This document shows, in pieces, positions 2,846 to 10,948 of a stretch of DNA of 64,000 bases. The position numbers and the translations under genes were made by a program. Each line of letters starts with the position of its first letter. Position 1 is the stretch's first letter. A model generated the notes under the pieces. The model searched no databases. It saw only the letters and a program-made list of their open reading frames with translations, and was not told where the DNA came from. This DNA comes from Adineta vaga (Eukaryota; Animalia; Rotifera). The stretch is taken from NCBI GenBank assembly GCA_021613535.1, contig CP075493.1, positions 13,516,001 to 13,580,000 of the forward strand. Direction: 5' to 3'.

Positions 2846-3480
2846 GTTATAATTTCCAAGAATTTGTTTATACATCGAATGATTATACTGATGTTTCTAT
2901 GTAGTCACCAATCTATATAAATAGTCAAATGCGAGAAGAAATAGAAGAAAATAAGAAAAACTTATGTCATGTTTTATTACTTAAATTAATTGATAAAGTA
3001 AAACATTAGTTTATGGGATAAAATAAAGGATGCTTTAGTAGTAACTGCATGATGTGTTGTTGTTTGACTTCGTTTGTAACTATACTATTTCTCAGTTCTT
3101 TACATGATTAAAAAAGTTCATTTTTATGCTGACTTTTTGTTATGTTGTTATGTGTGAATAAATGAATTAACACCGATGGATGCTAGTAATAATTATCAAA
3201 AGACGCACATTGGTTTTATTTTTATTCTCAGGTATATCATGCAATCTTTTACTGATATCAAAATGAATTCATATGTCGCTTGTATGTGGCGACACATATA
3301 CTATTGCGATACGCTTTGTAGAGGAACAACTAACGGTTAATGACGGAAAGAATGAATAATCGTCAAGTTATCCTATCACGCTGCATAGTGCCAAAAAAAT
3401 TTTCCTTATTTCTTCGTGCTCAGATAAATGGTAGTGTAGTTAACAATATTCTTTTCGTTATAGATACATCTTCATCAAAT

Positions 3481-4434
3481 ATGGCTAAACAATCATTATC
3501 TATTAATGATCTTCCATCTGAATTGCTATCGGAAGTCTTTCGATTTATTCAACCATTAGAAATGCTGCTTGATGCTTCACGTACTTGCCGTCTATGGCGT
3601 CAAATAATTAATAATGAATGGTTTCTTAACAAGTATTTTACTAATGGACTCAGTCGAAATCAATTGATCGGATGGTGGAAGTTTACCGATGTCAATAATA
3701 TAGGACATGACTCGAGTGGCATTTTAGGTGATCGCTATCATACAGTCGGGCAACCAACAGTCGAAGATTGTTTTTTGGGTAAATGTGCTGTGTTTGATGG
3801 GCAATCGTTTATTGATTTTCCCGTTAATCATAAATCTGAATATCAAACGGATTTGTACTCGGTGTCGGTTTGGTTTTGGGCTGATCCAAAAGCATGGAAC
3901 AGATATCAACAAGAAGGTGGATGGCGAACAGCGATTGGTTGTTGGAATGATTGGTCGGAAACTGCTCATGCATGGCTTCATCTTGGCTTTCATGTTGATA
4001 CAAACATTCACAATCAAGTGATGATCTCTCCAGCACAATATGCATTCGGTTGTTACGATAGACAAAAGACGGAACCTAACCGATGGTATCATGTTGTCGT
4101 TCGAGTGAGTCGACAATTTCAAGAATTATGGGTCAATGGACAAATAGTAAGCAGTGTGGACATGACTAACCCACACCTTCGACTGGAAGTGCGACTACCA
4201 TATCGACAAAACTGGCAGCCTTCACAATGGTGTCAACAAAGAATGCATTTACCAGAAGCTCTCTACATTGGATCAAAGAACAATCGACATCATAATCCAT
4301 GGATAGGTAAAATAGCTGATATATCTGTTTGGCGACGATGGCTGAAACCATTCGAAATTCGTGCCTTATATAAACAGCAAGCAGCTATTAATAACGTCAA
4401 ACTCGGCTCATTCATACATCGCAAAGACAAATAA
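3481..4434 (+). CDS. F-box protein with C-terminal LamG/concanavalin A-like jelly-roll domain
   Basis: INDLPSELLSEVFRFI...ASRTCRLWRQII is an F-box. LIGWWKF, FDG, SVSVWF, NRWYHVVV, LWVNGQ, LYIGS, WIGKIADISVWRRWL are LamG-3 motifs. ATG 3481 preferred because a pyrimidine tract and AG lie just upstream. Confidence 0.8.
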   Translation: MAKQSLSINDLPSELLSEVFRFIQPLEMLLDASRTCRLWRQIINNEWFLNKYFTNGLSRNQLIGWWKFTDVNNIGHDSSGILGDRYHTVGQPTVEDCFLGKCAVFDGQSFIDFPVNHKSEYQTDLYSVSVWFWADPKAWNRYQQEGGWRTAIGCWNDWSETAHAWLHLGFHVDTNIHNQVMISPAQYAFGCYDRQKTEPNRWYHVVVRVSRQFQELWVNGQIVSSVDMTNPHLRLEVRLPYRQNWQPSQWCQQRMHLPEALYIGSKNNRHHNPWIGKIADISVWRRWLKPFEIRALYKQQAAINNVKLGSFIHRKDK

Positions 4435-5594
4435 GGAATACTTATCGACCCTTGCTCTGTTCATATTTTGTTCGCATTCACACTGAATTATAAACGCATT
4501 GCTTAGAAAATAGTATCATGTATATAAGATATAGAAGTCTTTTTTTTTCTAAATTAATAAATATAATCTTTCTATACACACACATTGTATCAATGGTTTT
4601 TCGCATATCGGATCACTTAAATATGAAAGAATCTTGAGGATGTGCGTGGGTATGAATCTACGTGTTCTACTGGTTCCTGTTTAACACTCACACAGACACA
4701 CATACTCCACACCGACAGCTTTTCAGTAAGCAAATCAATATCGAGTAATTATCTTTGAAAAGATTGCTGTCCAGAAATAAAAGAAAATAATATGAAGAAC
4801 AAATTCAAGTTGTATAATCATTGATTGTGAGTGTCTCTCACTCTCATAGCTTTGTTTAAATGACTTTCTAGTAGTCAACTGGAATATTTCTAACTAGATG
4901 AGATTCATTTTTTGTCGCTGATCTCTTTGTGCATCAGTTAAAGATTTATGTGAACTAGAGAAAAACATTACTCACAAGCTGATGCATTTTATGAAAATAA
5001 AACAAATGCTTTTCGAAGTGTCTGTTTATCACCATAAAAGTGTTCTCATGATAAGAACGAAAAGAAATTAAAAATACAATTTTAATAAATCTTTTATTAT
5101 TATTGTGCTTTAAATTGGTTTAATGAGAGATGCTTACAGGGTAACATATGAATTAGAGAAGAAAAAGGGAGAAGTTTTAAGATTGAAACTACATCAATGT
5201 AACGTTTATTATGATTAAGCACTGTATTAGTTAACACTGTTTAACTGAGTGAATCTCAAGTACTTTTGATTTTAATACAATAGAATATTTCATGTTAGTT
5301 GGAAATTATGTTAGATTTTCCCCTTCATTACATCATGTACCAGGTCTCTCATACTGCCAAGAACAACGTTTGAATCAAACCAACTCCTTGATACAAGAAA
5401 AAACAATCATATTCATCCCTATATTTTTGTCGTTGACTCTTATATTATCATCAAAATGTGTGGTTGGAAAAAAACCCAGTAATCAAATTTGTCTTTATTT
5501 TTTCATTCACATAGACGCATGGTAAATATATACTTTTCTTTTACCACTTAGTCGACGACACGTATTTATTTCTCTCATCCTTTCTCTCTTTATC

Positions 5595-5690
5595 TATATA
5601 TTACCTTGATTTTGGCAAGTTTTGTTGTTTTTTCTTTTTCTGTAAGTATAATAAAAGTATAATATAATACGCGAGATTTTCTCATTCAAG
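5595..5690 (+). promoter_or_regulatory. TATA-like element, short non-coding leader exon and 5'-UTR intron (5642-5690) upstream of the GTPase cluster
   Basis: TATATA at 5595-5600, GTAAGT donor at 5642, ttttctcattcaAG acceptor ending at 5690, ATG 14 nt later. Confidence 0.5.
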
Positions 5691-5704
5691 ATTAAATAAT
5701 CATC

Positions 5705-6826
5705 ATGGATCAGTATCATTCTCTCAGTGATATTCTAGCAGAATTAAAACAACAGCGTGATGAGAAACCCCAGCAGTACATTACGGTTCCAACGGACCAA
5801 GAACGAACACTTCTATTGGTGGGACCAATACGAACTGGCAAATCAATAATCGCCGAAACTGTAGAAAATAGTCTTTATCAACCTGAAAGACCGATTACTT
5901 ATTCTGCCACTCGAACAGCTCAAATTCGACAAATTGGTAGTCTTAGGATTATTGATATACCTGGTTTTAATGAATTTCAAGTCGGACAATTCAGATTGAG
6001 TAATGATTCGATTCTTCAAATGATTGAAGAACAAATCAGTGAACATAATTCAATCGATCTTTTCGCTTTTGTTTTCCATCTCAATTATGGAATTAAAGAA
6101 GAAGATATTAAACTAATGATTTATATCAAATCCAAACTACCTGATCTGGCTGAAAGAATAATATTAATAATCACACATGCAGAAGAATTCACTGATCAAG
6201 AGAAAAATCGTTTATCAAATGAATTCTTCAATCATCCTAAGGTTAAAAAAAATCGTTTGGAAAGTTTTTTTCAAAAGAAAATCTTTTTTCTTGGTTGTCT
6301 TCGATATGAGTCACTCAATCAACGAGATAAAGAAGCACTTGTTCGTCAACATGAGAATGTCTTAAAAATGCGAAAACAATTTATTGAAAAATGTTTCGAA
6401 GATCTACCTCCAGTCAAACAGCCTAAACAAAAATCTTATATCTACAAAAGTTTATCATCACGATATGTTTATGTATCGATCTTAGTTTTCATCGTGGCAC
6501 TAGCCATTGGCTATGCTTCTTCTTCTTATATTAATTCAATTACAAACCAAAATAAGCTAGTGGGAAAGCTTACTGATACTGTAAATCAAAAGATAGTGGA
6601 AATGGAAAATATGGCAAAAACAATAAAAACGCAAAAGGAAAACCTAGAAGCACAGAAAAAAAGAGCAGAAACACAATCGAGAACACTAGAAGCACAAGCA
6701 AAAGCAGCACAAGAGCAATCAGAAAAGATGAAAAAACTTACACGTCATTTAATTGAATTAGAAGAACAGATAGCTCAAGCAAAAAAGAAAGAAAAAAAAT
6801 CTTTTTGGTCTAGTTTATTTGGTTAA
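5705..6826 (+). CDS. AIG1/GIMAP-like P-loop GTPase 1 (GTPase, TM helix, coiled coil, amphipathic tail)
   Basis: G1 GPIRTGKS, G2 SATR, G3 IIDIPG, G4 ITHAE; hydrophobic helix VYVSILVFIVALAIGYA; E/K/Q-rich heptads. Confidence 0.8.
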   Translation: MDQYHSLSDILAELKQQRDEKPQQYITVPTDQERTLLLVGPIRTGKSIIAETVENSLYQPERPITYSATRTAQIRQIGSLRIIDIPGFNEFQVGQFRLSNDSILQMIEEQISEHNSIDLFAFVFHLNYGIKEEDIKLMIYIKSKLPDLAERIILIITHAEEFTDQEKNRLSNEFFNHPKVKKNRLESFFQKKIFFLGCLRYESLNQRDKEALVRQHENVLKMRKQFIEKCFEDLPPVKQPKQKSYIYKSLSSRYVYVSILVFIVALAIGYASSSYINSITNQNKLVGKLTDTVNQKIVEMENMAKTIKTQKENLEAQKKRAETQSRTLEAQAKAAQEQSEKMKKLTRHLIELEEQIAQAKKKEKKSFWSSLFG

Positions 6827-7012
6827 TAAACATTTTTCACGCGTCAATACACTTATGTTTTAATGGTGTTTTGTTGAATTTGATCTTTTATTTCTTATTT
6901 TCTAGATTGATGATAATCATCATTATTAAGTTATTTTCCAACAAATTCATCCTCTACATTTAAATTACATAATAAATTTTATGATTTATTTTTTTAAGAT
7001 TAATTAATCATC

Positions 7013-8170
7013 ATGGAGTCTTATGCTTCTCTCAACGATATCATAGATGAATTAAAACAACAACGTGATGAAAATCCTCATGTGTATATTCCAGTACCAA
7101 TCGAACCAGAAAGAACGATTCTACTAATGGGAAGTACACGTGCAGGTAAATCGACAATTGTCAGAACTTTGGCCAATAGTCTTTATCAACCTGAAAGACC
7201 GACTCTTTATTCTGCCACTCGAACACCTGAACCTCAGAAGATTAACGGCCTTACGATCATTGATATGCCTGGTTTCAACGATCTTCGAGTAAAAAATCCA
7301 CCATTAAGCAATAATTTGATCCTTCGAATGTTACAAGAACAAATGGAAAAATATCATCCGATTGATCTTTTCGCGTTTGTCTTCAACTATCAAAGTGGAA
7401 TCACAAACGATGATATTAATTCGATGATTAATGTCAAATCAGAATTTCCTGATCTCGCTGGAAGAACAATATTATTAGTTACACACGCAGAAGAATTGGA
7501 TGATAAAGCGAAAAATCGTTTAATCGACGAATTTTACAGTCATCCTAAGATTAGTAAAAATCATCTGGAAGATTTTTTCCAAAAAGAAATCTTTTTTCTT
7601 GGTTGTCTTCGATATGAATCAATCAATCGACCAGATATAGTAGCGCTTACTAATGAACATGAAAATGTTTTAAGTATGAGGAAAACATTTATTCAAAAAT
7701 GTTTTCGAAATCTTCCTCCACGCAAGCTATTGAAACAAAAGCAGTCTATTTATAAATATTTATCAATATTAGCTGTTATTATGGCAGTTGTTCTTGTTCT
7801 TATTGCTTATAGTTTCAGTGATTCCGGAGACAAACAAATTGATACAGAAGATCCAATGGATCATTCGATCCATGAATTCGTTTTCAATACCGATGAAGAC
7901 GCTTCGCTTGAAGAGAAACAAATCTCTTCCAATGACGATGTCAATGAAGATCCAACTGATACTGAGAAGAAATCATCTCTGATCAAGGAAGAATCACAAG
8001 CGGTTCAGGAATTAACTAATGCAATGCGTGACTTTAGTAACAAATATACGCAAATGGAGGAAAGGCTAAACAGGATTGAAAGCCGTTTAACCGATATAGT
8101 TAATTATATCGCTAAGGAAAAGAAAGAAAAAGAAAAATCTTTATTTTCGAAGATTGCTGATTATTTTTAA
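7013..8170 (+). CDS. AIG1/GIMAP-like P-loop GTPase 2 (paralog of GTPase 1)
   Basis: G1 GSTRAGKST, G3 IIDMPG, G4 VTHAE; shares SLYQPERP and IFFLGCLRYES with GTPase 1; TM helix, acidic linker, coiled coil. Confidence 0.8.
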   Translation: MESYASLNDIIDELKQQRDENPHVYIPVPIEPERTILLMGSTRAGKSTIVRTLANSLYQPERPTLYSATRTPEPQKINGLTIIDMPGFNDLRVKNPPLSNNLILRMLQEQMEKYHPIDLFAFVFNYQSGITNDDINSMINVKSEFPDLAGRTILLVTHAEELDDKAKNRLIDEFYSHPKISKNHLEDFFQKEIFFLGCLRYESINRPDIVALTNEHENVLSMRKTFIQKCFRNLPPRKLLKQKQSIYKYLSILAVIMAVVLVLIAYSFSDSGDKQIDTEDPMDHSIHEFVFNTDEDASLEEKQISSNDDVNEDPTDTEKKSSLIKEESQAVQELTNAMRDFSNKYTQMEERLNRIESRLTDIVNYIAKEKKEKEKSLFSKIADYF

Positions 8171-8255
8171 CCTTAGACGAATCAACAAACTTAGTTCTAC
8201 TGTTTTAATGGAATATAATTTTGATTTTTTTTGTATTCAGATTAACTATAAACAT

Positions 8256-9233
8256 ATGAACACTGCAAGCTCCTGTACTACAAATGAAAGCCGAGATGAT
8301 ATTCGTCGACGCGGTAAGTTCGGAATCGAATTTGTTTTAAGGTATAAATTAATTATCATAATTACAGGTAACCAAGATAAAACCATGACTGTTGATGAGA
8401 TGTCAAAGGATCTCTATAAAGAAATGGGAAACATGAATGAATATCAATTCCAAACAGCTATTCAACGAACACTTGTGCTTCTCGGAAGGACGCGTGTTGG
8501 CAAAACTACGCTGATGAAAGTTATCCAAAATCCTCTCTATCGACCTGATATGCCTAGTATTTTTTCTGAGACTGGAAGGGTTAATATTCATCAGTTCGTC
8601 ACAAATCATAAAAATCGACACTATTCTTTCACTATTATTGATTCTCCTGGTTTATATGAATGTATGCGACATGACGGAAGGCCTCTAACCAACGAAACTG
8701 TGAAACATCTTCTTGATAATTGTATAACCCAGGATGTTACTCATATTCATGCATTTGCATTTGTCTTTAGTATTCAAGGTTCAATTAATGATGAAGATAT
8801 TCAATCGATGATTTTTATCAAGAAACATTATCCAACATTGAAAAAATTTTTTATGCTGATTTTAACACATTGCGAAGAAAAAACAGATGAAGAAAAGAAA
8901 CGATTAACCGACGAATTCTTTTCACATCCTCGAGTGATAAAACATAATTTACACGAATTTTTTAATTTAGGATATTTTTATACTGGCTCCCTTCGACCAG
9001 AATTAGGATCTAATCCAAATTTAGAGGCAGCTATAAGTCAACAACGGAAGGTGTTGGAAATGCGGAGTGTGTTATTAGATTTTCTCATTCAACGCGAAGA
9101 AACATTCAATATCCATCAGTCGAACATAACATCTTCCAATACATTGGAACGATTCAAACAAGTTTTACTGTGGCTTTGCGCTTTTCTTATTGGAATGTTT
9201 TTTCTTTTGATTTTCTTTGATATTAAAGTATAG
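8256..9233 (+). CDS. AIG1/GIMAP-like P-loop GTPase 3, tail-anchored; in-frame 54-bp intron 8314-8367
   Basis: G1 GRTRVGKTT, G3 IIDSPG, G4 LTHCE; C-terminal TM VLLWLCAFLIGMFFLLIFF; GTAAGT...TACAG intron. Confidence 0.8.
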   Translation: MNTASSCTTNESRDDIRRRGKFGIEFVLRYKLIIIITGNQDKTMTVDEMSKDLYKEMGNMNEYQFQTAIQRTLVLLGRTRVGKTTLMKVIQNPLYRPDMPSIFSETGRVNIHQFVTNHKNRHYSFTIIDSPGLYECMRHDGRPLTNETVKHLLDNCITQDVTHIHAFAFVFSIQGSINDEDIQSMIFIKKHYPTLKKFFMLILTHCEEKTDEEKKRLTDEFFSHPRVIKHNLHEFFNLGYFYTGSLRPELGSNPNLEAAISQQRKVLEMRSVLLDFLIQREETFNIHQSNITSSNTLERFKQVLLWLCAFLIGMFFLLIFFDIKV

Positions 9234-9774
9234 CCAATCAAAAATTTGAGCTAGCAAGGTTTTTCGCCGTTTTCAACATTATTTGAGAGAATGAAAACTG
9301 CTGATTACGAATATATACTTCTGAACCTCAGCAAATGTATCCTTCATAAAAACAGTATCCTTCGAATATTTCGTTTATTTTTCAACCGGAAGGAGCCATT
9401 TTCTGAGGCTAAGAAGTATATATTCGTAATTAGCGAAAAACATTTTGTTGACTTCGCAGTGTCTGTGCCTTATGTGATTTAGAATTAGTTTCTTTTTTGA
9501 AGTTCAACAATGTGAAAAAATATGATTTTTAACGTTCAAAGATGAAAGCCTTGTCTGTTTATTGCTTGTGCATTCGTAGGCGAAGTTCGACTACTTGTCT
9601 ACAATCAGAATGAATCAAGGGCACTAATATTTTCTTTTTACTTAATAACTTTCGTTTTCATAGTTAACTATATTATTCATAGAACATACTTTCAAAAATC
9701 GAAAGAGTGTGAGTGAAGGTGTCATAAGAGACATAAAGAAAAAGTTTTTATTAAAAATTATGAATGTGGACAGT

Positions 9775-10948
9775 TTACGTAATTGTAATGTTGACGATTG
9801 TCATTCCTGAACAACAGAGATAGTTAGTTAACCAAAAACTAATAACATACGTATCACCGACAACTGTTGAAAATGTTTGACTGATTGTATCACCATAGAA
9901 TGCGCACCGATCGTAATAGTAATAATCTCCTGTTTTCGCATACTGATTATCGTGATAAGCCGTTCCTGTATTGATGAGACCACACGAGCCTGAATAATTC
10001 CATGCAGTTAAGCTGCCTGATTCGAATCCTCCATTGATGATTATTTGTGTTAAACCATGATACACATTGACCTCATCTAACATCCAACCTCCTAAATCAT
10101 GTCGAAAAAAGAACGACAATGTTACTGATGCCTTATTAGCTATCCAAGTATATGCATAACAATTGTAAGCTGGATAGTTGGATGATGATGGATTTGTAAC
10201 GCTAAAGAGCATACCACTCGATCTTGATTGAGATGCACATGGCGGAGTAGCCGTCACTAAATCAAAAGTAATATATTCAACAGTAGCATTGCATATAAAG
10301 ACCGGTCCGAATATCCGACTGTGAACTTGGATCTTTCTCTTCAACTGAAGTCTTCTAACGCATAACTTATAGTTCTGAACGAATCGCACACGATCGAAGG
10401 TGTAGGGTTAGAGATACGACTAAATATTCGAAATAAAAATACTCTACCTGTTGTTGTTGCTGTCGTAACACTGAACATCATAGAGAATGTGTGTGTACTT
10501 TGTTCTGTGCCGGTTATTATAGTTGACTTTGTCGATGTTATTGTTAGATCGGTTGTTACAGTTGAAGAACATGTAGGAAAAGATTCTAAAAGGAGAACAT
10601 GAATTTATATATTCTTTTGTTTTATCATGAAAGAAACATCATACCATAATTTTTCTTGCAACAAATAACTGTTGCAGAAGTATTTTCCGTTGATTTTATT
10701 GAGTCTTTTCCACACAGTTCTGCAAACATTGAACATATGTTTTTATTTTTGAAATAAACCGCTGTTTGGCAATAATAATCATTATGGCATGTTCGAATAC
10801 AATCATTGATTGATGATTGATTTGCTAATGAATTATTACCAATGGAAGAACAGGAGATATTCGATTGATAAATTGATTGTCGATGAAGTTCAACAATTAT
10901 AAGAGAATTTACTGCAGGAAATAGTAAATAAATCAAAATCGTAAACAT
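9775..10948 (-). CDS. Secreted protein: PAN/apple domain, Thr-rich linker, carbohydrate-binding-like (NGGFE) domain; 3 exons
   Basis: Exons 10948-10645, 10585-10448, 10256-9775 in frame. Signal peptide; CIRTC...CQTAVYF...C apple pattern; INGGFESG..W motif. Confidence 0.7.

Follow-up and report, generated by a model that had tools for sequence, protein, structure and literature searches.

A conserved acceptor module before three GIMAP-like GTPase genes of Adineta vaga: inherited leaders and a candidate spliced-leader operon

On chromosome 1 of the bdelloid rotifer Adineta vaga, three genes for AIG1/GIMAP-like GTPases, here called G1, G2 and G3, lie head to tail on the forward strand, and each is preceded by a pyrimidine tract, an AG and nearly the same short leader. 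How did three open reading frames (ORFs) come by the same beginning, and are they expressed together? The window analysed here is a stretch of 64,000 nucleotides (GenBank assembly GCA_021613535.1, contig CP075493.1, positions 13,516,001 to 13,580,000). An earlier note, made from its letters, had proposed either a polycistronic transcript resolved by trans-splicing, or a single leader exon spliced in cis to mutually exclusive GTPase exons. The leaders are instead part of a module of ~45 nt (an A/T-rich hexamer block, a T-tract, YAG, ATTAA... and the ATG) that was copied with each gene. Our preferred reading, to which we assign a probability of about 0.5, is that these inherited modules are spliced-leader acceptors and that they belong to an operon-like pair of a G1/2-type and a G3-type gene, with three genes in A. 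vaga.

The three ORFs were recognized by direct reading and from the ORF list, all on the plus strand; their coordinates, with those of the surrounding signals, are collected in Table 1. In alignment, all three proteins share the P-loop GxxxxGK[ST] (GPIRTGKS, GSTRAGKS and GRTRVGKT), the DxPG motif (IIDIPG, IIDMPG and IIDSPG) and a THxEE motif (ITHAEE, VTHAEE and LTHCEE). A G4 region of the THxEE type is typical of GIMAPs. The Pfam AIG1 profile (PF04548, gathering score 27) is exceeded by G2 with 32.3 bits and by G3 with 35.9 bits, protein searches with G3 having used its exon 2 alone; G1 gives no AIG1 match and reaches 20.9 bits with MMR_HSR1, just under the cut-off of 21.9. Identity to G1 is 48% for G2 and 33% for G3. 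Looking up the exact G1 protein in public assemblies, which seem to exclude records of this genome, gave no match. The transmembrane (TM) helix lies at residues ~255-273 of G1, followed by a charged tail of 100 residues, and at residues ~250-268 of G2, followed by an acidic tail of 117 residues; both tails are probably coiled-coil. In G3 the helix stands 4 residues from the C-terminus, and the protein is tail-anchored. The three genes are tandem paralogues in a bdelloid branch of membrane-anchored AIG1/GIMAP-type GTPases, and family likeness makes them candidate immune-type GTPases, a putative role.

Reading and a motif script confirm the signals that had been described before. An AG followed by an ATTAA leader occurs at 5691, 6999 and 8241, and a copy lacking its ATG, which has decayed to ATT in ATTGATGATAATCATCATT, at 6906. 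The gaps from stop to ATG are 186 bp between G1 and G2 and 85 bp between G2 and G3; measured from stop to acceptor they amount to 172 nt, or 79 nt if counted to the relic acceptor, and 70 nt. Across the three upstream regions one good donor occurs, GTAAGT at 5642, the sole instance there of GTAAG, GTGAG, GTAAA or GTATG. The stretch from this donor to the G1 acceptor includes the A/T-rich block TATAATATAAT (5658-5668) and could be an intron of the 5' untranslated region (5'UTR) or part of an outron. Further upstream, the TATATA box at 5595 is a possible promoter element of G1 or of the whole array. AATAAA overlaps the G1 stop, as stated. Its second instance, at 6971, may mark a branch-point region, act as a TATA-like element or serve G1 as a distal poly(A) signal. 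The script found no AATAAA from the G2 stop to the G3 acceptor; the nearest form there is AATATA at 8212, 27 nt before the acceptor.

Part of this arrangement is ordinary. A T-tract with AG shortly before an ATG is common in the window, for instance at the ORFs of 29487, 31658, 44418 and 52422, so that the generic side of the observation is what one meets in a bdelloid genome. The exact 19-mer AGATTAANTAATCATCATG, in contrast, was found solely at G1 and G2 in the A. vaga genome that we searched (100.8 Mb, 6 contigs). At up to two mismatches it has 56 matches, against 17 for a reversed control. Since the exact form is confined to these two genes, we rejected the leader as a genome-wide regulatory motif.

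The likeness between the leaders is accounted for by descent. Pairwise alignments of the spacers exceed those of shuffled sequences: positions 6844-6920 align with the G2-G3 spacer at 8182-8255 with a score of 29, compared to 17.9 ± 3.0 for shuffles, 3 of 500 of which reach 29. The G3 module (8212-8240) is likewise paralogous to 6971-7006, and the scar at 6905 aligns with the acceptor and leader of G3-type genes from other bdelloids. We read the copy at 6905 as a G3-type acceptor that was carried along, in the A. vaga line, by the duplication of a G1/2-type gene, the duplicated unit having included the spacer behind that gene and the beginning of G3. On these grounds the similarity of the leaders was inherited by gene duplication and does not reflect one shared exon.

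A comparison with other bdelloids had been suggested as a check of the acceptor motif. Relatives recovered by word search all come from bdelloids or environmental samples; the orthologous contigs that we compared (L040-L043, L093, L094 from Rotaria socialis, L096, L099 and L101) all retain introns and are therefore genomic. At least seven other lineages carry the upstream module, ahead of G1/2-type and G3-type genes alike. In L040, L043, L093, L094, L096, L099 and L101, the two types form a pair in the same orientation, G1/2-type first and G3-type second, with 31-177 nt from stop to acceptor across these seven lineages (31 nt in L101). Their G3-type proteins share 45-72% mutual identity, which points to distinct lineages or old paralogues. 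Every G1/2-type copy has its T-tract and YAG 7-16 nt before the ATG, the distance being 14 nt in 7 of 10. All G3-type copies have TCTAG directly followed by AT..., then a tiny exon that holds the ATG, and a donor of the form GTAAA or GTAAG. The G3-type leader of L043 and L099 has the form ATTTAA(TC/CAC)TAATCATCGTG, which is the G1/G2 leader with its ATG changed to GTG; the module thus predates the split of the two gene types.

Evidence from RNA comes from assembled contigs, which are blind to transcript starts, ends, strand and single molecules. Three runs from two studies, X1, X2 and X4, were taken as transcriptomes because depth is zero in the flanks and the G3 intron is removed; the DNA run X11 served as comparison. 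Over 4694-5663 and 9350-10300 these three runs show no contig depth, save for a trace at 5082-5275 in X4. The G3 intron is the only junction observed in RNA contigs, as the joint 8312 to 8367 (cut +1) in X1 and X4, and it is retained in the X11 DNA.

G1 is transcribed in all three runs, and in the RNA contigs its message begins at the AG of the module: contigs start at 5691 in X1 and 5689 in X2, at most two bases from the predicted acceptor. Those of G2 start at 7008 in X1 and 7005 in X2. Past the G1 stop, RNA reaches 6837, 6902 and 6965 in the three runs, the last through an X4 contig (6457-6965) that extends 139 nt beyond the stop. None of the three runs has a contig across 6966-7004. The second spacer is covered by the X1 contig listed in Table 1, which runs from the 3' coding end of G2 through its stop and the spacer, passes the G3 acceptor unspliced and continues into spliced G3. 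A contig across two genes can stem from overlapping transcripts and is not proof of one transcript. Two loose contig ends, at 6909 and 9120, were considered as trans-splice junctions and dismissed as chance, the parts shared with the window being just 17-18 nt; their loose letters map to one locus on chromosome 6, and BLAST gave no other similarity.

Could the acceptors receive a spliced leader? We searched the genome with the 23-nt sequence TGCTTATTACAACTTACCAAGAG, which we take to be the bdelloid spliced leader, and obtained 59 matches at up to two mismatches. The one match that we read through has a GTAAAT donor directly 3' of it. Many of the matches form divergent head-to-head pairs ~154 bp apart, such as that at 1330-1640 of L007 (C1:2551160-2551336); they concentrate on chromosomes 2, 5 and 6 and include a few variant leader exons (...TTAAAACTT... 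and ...CCAAAAG). The leader is placed on more than 50% of bdelloid mRNAs in a passage of PMC1925144 that cites Pouchkina-Stantcheva and Tunnacliffe (2005). A paper of 2021 stated that operons and polycistronic mRNAs were unreported in rotifers (PMC7986045), and one of 2025 loosely counts rotifers among the lineages with trans-splicing and operonic transcription (PMC12460157).

We also scanned metagenome contigs for the 3' end of the leader followed by ATTAA, 9-10 nt and an ATG. Of 49 matches, 48 lack leader letters ahead of the matched stretch and were set aside as chance. The other is an environmental contig (L058 1-60, JGI24214J29971_1007984) in which the last 11 nt of the leader are joined to ATTAACAACAGAAA-ATG at the head of an unrelated ORF. 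It shows a junction between leader and ATTAA in a wild bdelloid transcript.

Our preferred reading builds on these observations. The module would be a 3' splice site that takes the 23-nt bdelloid spliced leader. The combination of T-tract and YAG is the one feature retained in every copy, the leaders of 7-16 nt are too short for complete 5'UTRs, similar sites abut ATGs elsewhere in the window, and the leader is abundant in bdelloids; all four points argue for such an acceptor. Unspliced 5'UTRs of this length are inadequate for initiation by scanning; with the leader added, they would come to ~30-39 nt, and to about 37 nt in these genes. For a spliced-leader acceptor with a spacer of 31-177 nt and poly(A)-signal-like hexamers 22-28 nt upstream, read-through is the simplest source of precursor. 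The precursor of G3, and probably that of G2, would then arise by read-through from the gene in front, and the ancestral pair of a G1/2-type and a G3-type gene would work as a small operon resolved by the spliced leader, which in A. vaga would have grown to three genes. It is plausible but unproven that the trio is an operon. The stronger claim, of a true bicistronic operon (tricistronic in A. vaga) that has used the single bdelloid leader since before the bdelloid genera diverged, we put forward tentatively, at somewhat under even odds; in it, polyadenylation of the upstream gene would be coupled to trans-splicing of the downstream one inside the spacer.

Several observations weigh against this reading. 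Among the contigs listed for X1, X2 and X4, none carries spliced-leader letters (...CTTACCAAGAG) at 5691, 6999 or 8241, and the G1 contigs that begin at the acceptor do so at their own first letter. The metagenome scan found no leader-headed transcript of the G1/G2/G3 family. X2 has no contig over 8015-8366. In all three runs, contigs of G3 are at least as deep as those of G2, which fits a separate G3 promoter, contig depth being a poor measure of expression. Finally, A/T-rich hexamers stand 22-34 nt before the AGs (TATAAT at 5658 and 5663, AATAAA at 6971, TATAAT at 8214), and such a hexamer could be a TATA box with the start at the "acceptor". The earlier proposal of a polycistron resolved by trans-splicing is compatible with these findings and has some indirect support: conserved acceptors, short spacers, the X1 bridge and the leader genes speak for it, whereas the RNA contigs show neither a leader junction nor a transcript spanning all three genes.

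The chief rival treats G1, G2 and G3 as tandem duplicates transcribed independently and monocistronically, each from a compact promoter in its spacer or just ahead of it, with an A/T-rich box ~25-34 nt upstream. Transcription would start at or just before YAG/ATTAA (the slash marks the boundary), with or without trans-splicing of a short outron, and RNA in the spacers would be 3'UTR overlap or read-through noise. We regard it as a serious alternative, if itself short of an even chance. It draws on the TATAAT- or AATAAA-type hexamers just mentioned, on TATAAA-type boxes at -23 to -34 in L043, L042 and L101, and on RNA contigs that begin at or just past the site with no leader letters. In the three runs, G2 contigs are shallower than those of G1 and G3, and X4 has almost no G2; the spacers of a paralogous cluster on chromosome 3, at ~385-500 nt, offer room for promoters; and operons were stated to be unreported in rotifers in 2021. 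However, the A/T box is missing in L093, L040, L096, L041 and L099, whereas T-tract and YAG occur in every copy examined. By eye, a strict A/T motif is present at 7 of 18 sites, against ~3 expected by a rough hand estimate. The true G3 intron has the same A/T block ~20-27 nt ahead of its AG, and the block may therefore be no more than a branch-point region. We did not accept a TATA box near -30 as proof of independent promoters, the box not being conserved in orthologues and lending itself to other readings, as a poly(A) signal or a branch point. A start at the site would moreover imply 5'UTRs of just 7-16 nt, and the 31 nt from stop to acceptor in L101 and the 70 nt in A. vaga leave no room for a 3' end and a promoter. 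The X1 contig that bridges G2 and spliced G3 counts against independence as well.

Two further explanations fare much worse. A leader exon at ~5625-5641, spliced in cis to 5691, 6999 or 8241 as mutually exclusive terminal exons, would give a role to GTAAGT at 5642, beside which the three upstream regions have no other good donor, and to the acceptor-like site before each ORF. In three runs, though, RNA contig depth is zero over 5470-5663, no joint leads from 5641 to any acceptor, including those of 6999 and 8241 for which the exon had been predicted, and contigs run uninterrupted through 8056-8312 and 6457-6965. Orthologues carry the module before single genes or pairs, and duplication already explains the similarity of the leaders; we consider this part of the earlier note practically disproved. 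Slightly less improbable, yet still very unlikely, is that G2 and G3 are one gene for a protein with two GTPase domains, with a cis-intron from ~8003 (or ~8107) to 8240. Public gene models do fuse the two over 7013-9233; the predicted proteins, of 642 aa and 576 aa, each have two GTPase domains. NCBI I4U23_004447 [Adineta vaga] (P0002), 100% identical to G2 over 86% of its length, places the intron from ~8003 to 8240; an older model (P0001) starts it at ~8107 and retains the 54-nt intron. That two annotation versions independently fuse the genes in frame through the 8240 acceptor hints that the annotators' evidence crossed the gap, and one RNA contig does cover both ORFs. Against this, X1, X2 and X4 contain no joint from 8003 or 8107 to 8241, X1 retains 8056-8312, the predicted donor GTTCAG is weak, and in all other lineages the upstream gene has a stop and tail of its own. 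We regard the public fusion models as mis-merged.

Table 1. Coordinates of the genes, signals and bridging contig within the 64,000-nt window (position 1 is its first letter).
Feature	Position	Strand	Description
TATA-like box	5595..5603	+	TATATA at 5595; ~95 nt before G1 acceptor
Donor-like site to G1 acceptor	5642..5690	+	49 nt, GTAAGT at 5642
G1 leader	5691..5704	+	14 nt ATTAAATAATCATC, after AG 5689-90
G1	5705..6826	+	373 aa, GIMAP-like GTPase, P-loop GPIRTGKS
AATAAA overlapping G1 stop	6825..6830	+	Motif script
Putative duplication scar ("fourth copy")	6844..6925	+	T-tract 6891-6903, AG 6904-05, decayed leader ATTGATGATAATCATCATT
Second AATAAA	6971..6976	+	22 nt before G2 acceptor
G2 T-tract, acceptor and leader	6990..7012	+	AG 6997-98, then 14-nt ATTAATTAATCATC
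G2	7013..8170	+	385 aa, AIG1-family GTPase
X1 bridging contig	8056..9236	+	1127 nt; 8056-8312 and 8367-9236
G3 upstream module	8212..8240	+	AATATAAT 8212-19, T-tract 8225-8237, AG 8239-40
G3 exon 1	8241..8313	+	15-nt leader ATTAACTATAAACAT, ATG 8256, 58 coding nt
G3 intron	8314..8367	+	54 nt, GT..AG
G3 exon 2	8368..9233	+	AIG1 GTPase domain and TM tail anchor (translated from 8370)

Upstream of the cluster, on the same strand and 1.27 kb before G1, lies a gene (3340-4434) for a protein with an F-box and a concanavalin-like (Laminin_G_3) domain. Between it and G1, one X11 DNA contig skips a stretch of 647 bp (4694-5340) and has the 9 letters CCACACCCT instead. This is an indel that distinguishes haplotypes or strains; should G1 be expressed from both forms, its promoter must lie within ~350 nt of the acceptor. 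Just 3' of G3 there is a presence/absence polymorphism of 226 bp (9264-9491), a segment skipped in one X11 DNA contig. It holds a 46-nt inverted repeat, 87% complementary, with arms at 9300-9345 and 9389-9434, and looks like a small hairpin or an insertion resembling a miniature inverted-repeat transposable element (MITE). RNA and DNA contigs all break at ~9228-9244, probably because of this insertion.

Elsewhere in the genome, our search revealed a more distant paralogous cluster of three genes on the minus strand of chromosome 3 (C3:6180000-6188500, L036). Its genes have TTTTCAG/ATTAATTAT... and TTTTTCAG/GAATTAAG... before their ATGs. Genes 1 and 3 are nearly identical over ~190 aa, a sign of recent duplication or conversion, and gene 1 seems to be truncated. 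The gene between them lacks a TM helix and ends in CILL, a CaaX-like prenylation box. On chromosome 6 (C6:2304165-2305024; L024, L025 and L039), a decayed G2-like fragment is 62% identical over residues 29-109 and then falls to 34% identity, with in-frame TGA codons at two places. We take it for a probable pseudogene, possibly left over from a duplicated (ohnologous) copy of the cluster.

What follows depends on the reading. If the operon is real, it would be among the first documented in Rotifera and would put paralogous immune-type GTPases in fixed stoichiometric linkage. With three short genes, acceptors at known positions and a relic acceptor as internal control, it would also make a compact test case for leader-resolved polycistrons in bdelloids. 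The conserved pairing of a long-tailed with a tail-anchored GIMAP-like GTPase suggests that the two proteins may act together. With independent genes, the locus would be an ordinary tandem duplication, of practical use mainly for correcting the public G2-G3 fusion model.

How does the locus compare with known systems? With the GIMAP/IAN GTPases of vertebrates, plants and molluscs it shares the AIG1 domain, above gathering score in G2 and G3, the P-loop GxxxxGK[ST], DxPG, THxEE in place of NKxD, C-terminal membrane anchoring and the arrangement in tandem clusters. GIMAP1 and GIMAP5 are tail-anchored, as is G3. Unlike in that family, the AIG1 scores reach only ~30 bits, G1 stays under the cut-offs, and G1 and G2 continue for ~100-117 residues past the TM helix. 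Clusters of the protocadherin or UGT1A type are likewise tandem arrays of similar units on one strand; there, however, many alternative exons are joined to shared constant exons, while here the genes are complete and have their own stops.

Closer parallels are found among spliced-leader operons. Those of nematodes have intercistronic regions of ~100 nt and use SL2, whereas tunicate and chaetognath operons have single or non-specific leaders and very short spacers. To our knowledge, only one leader type is known in bdelloids. Like these operons, the present locus has same-strand genes 70-186 nt apart, a strong acceptor just upstream of each downstream ATG, a hexamer resembling a poly(A) signal 22-28 nt ahead of the acceptors, an abundant spliced leader and a gene pair kept across lineages. 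It differs in that the RNA contigs hold no leader junction or polycistronic molecule, and in being made of paralogues, where classical operons mostly join unrelated housekeeping genes. The short distance from acceptor to ATG is what one expects of trans-spliced genes. Altogether, the locus is a tandem AIG1/GIMAP GTPase cluster equipped with a probable bdelloid trans-splice acceptor module, and both of these are of known kinds.

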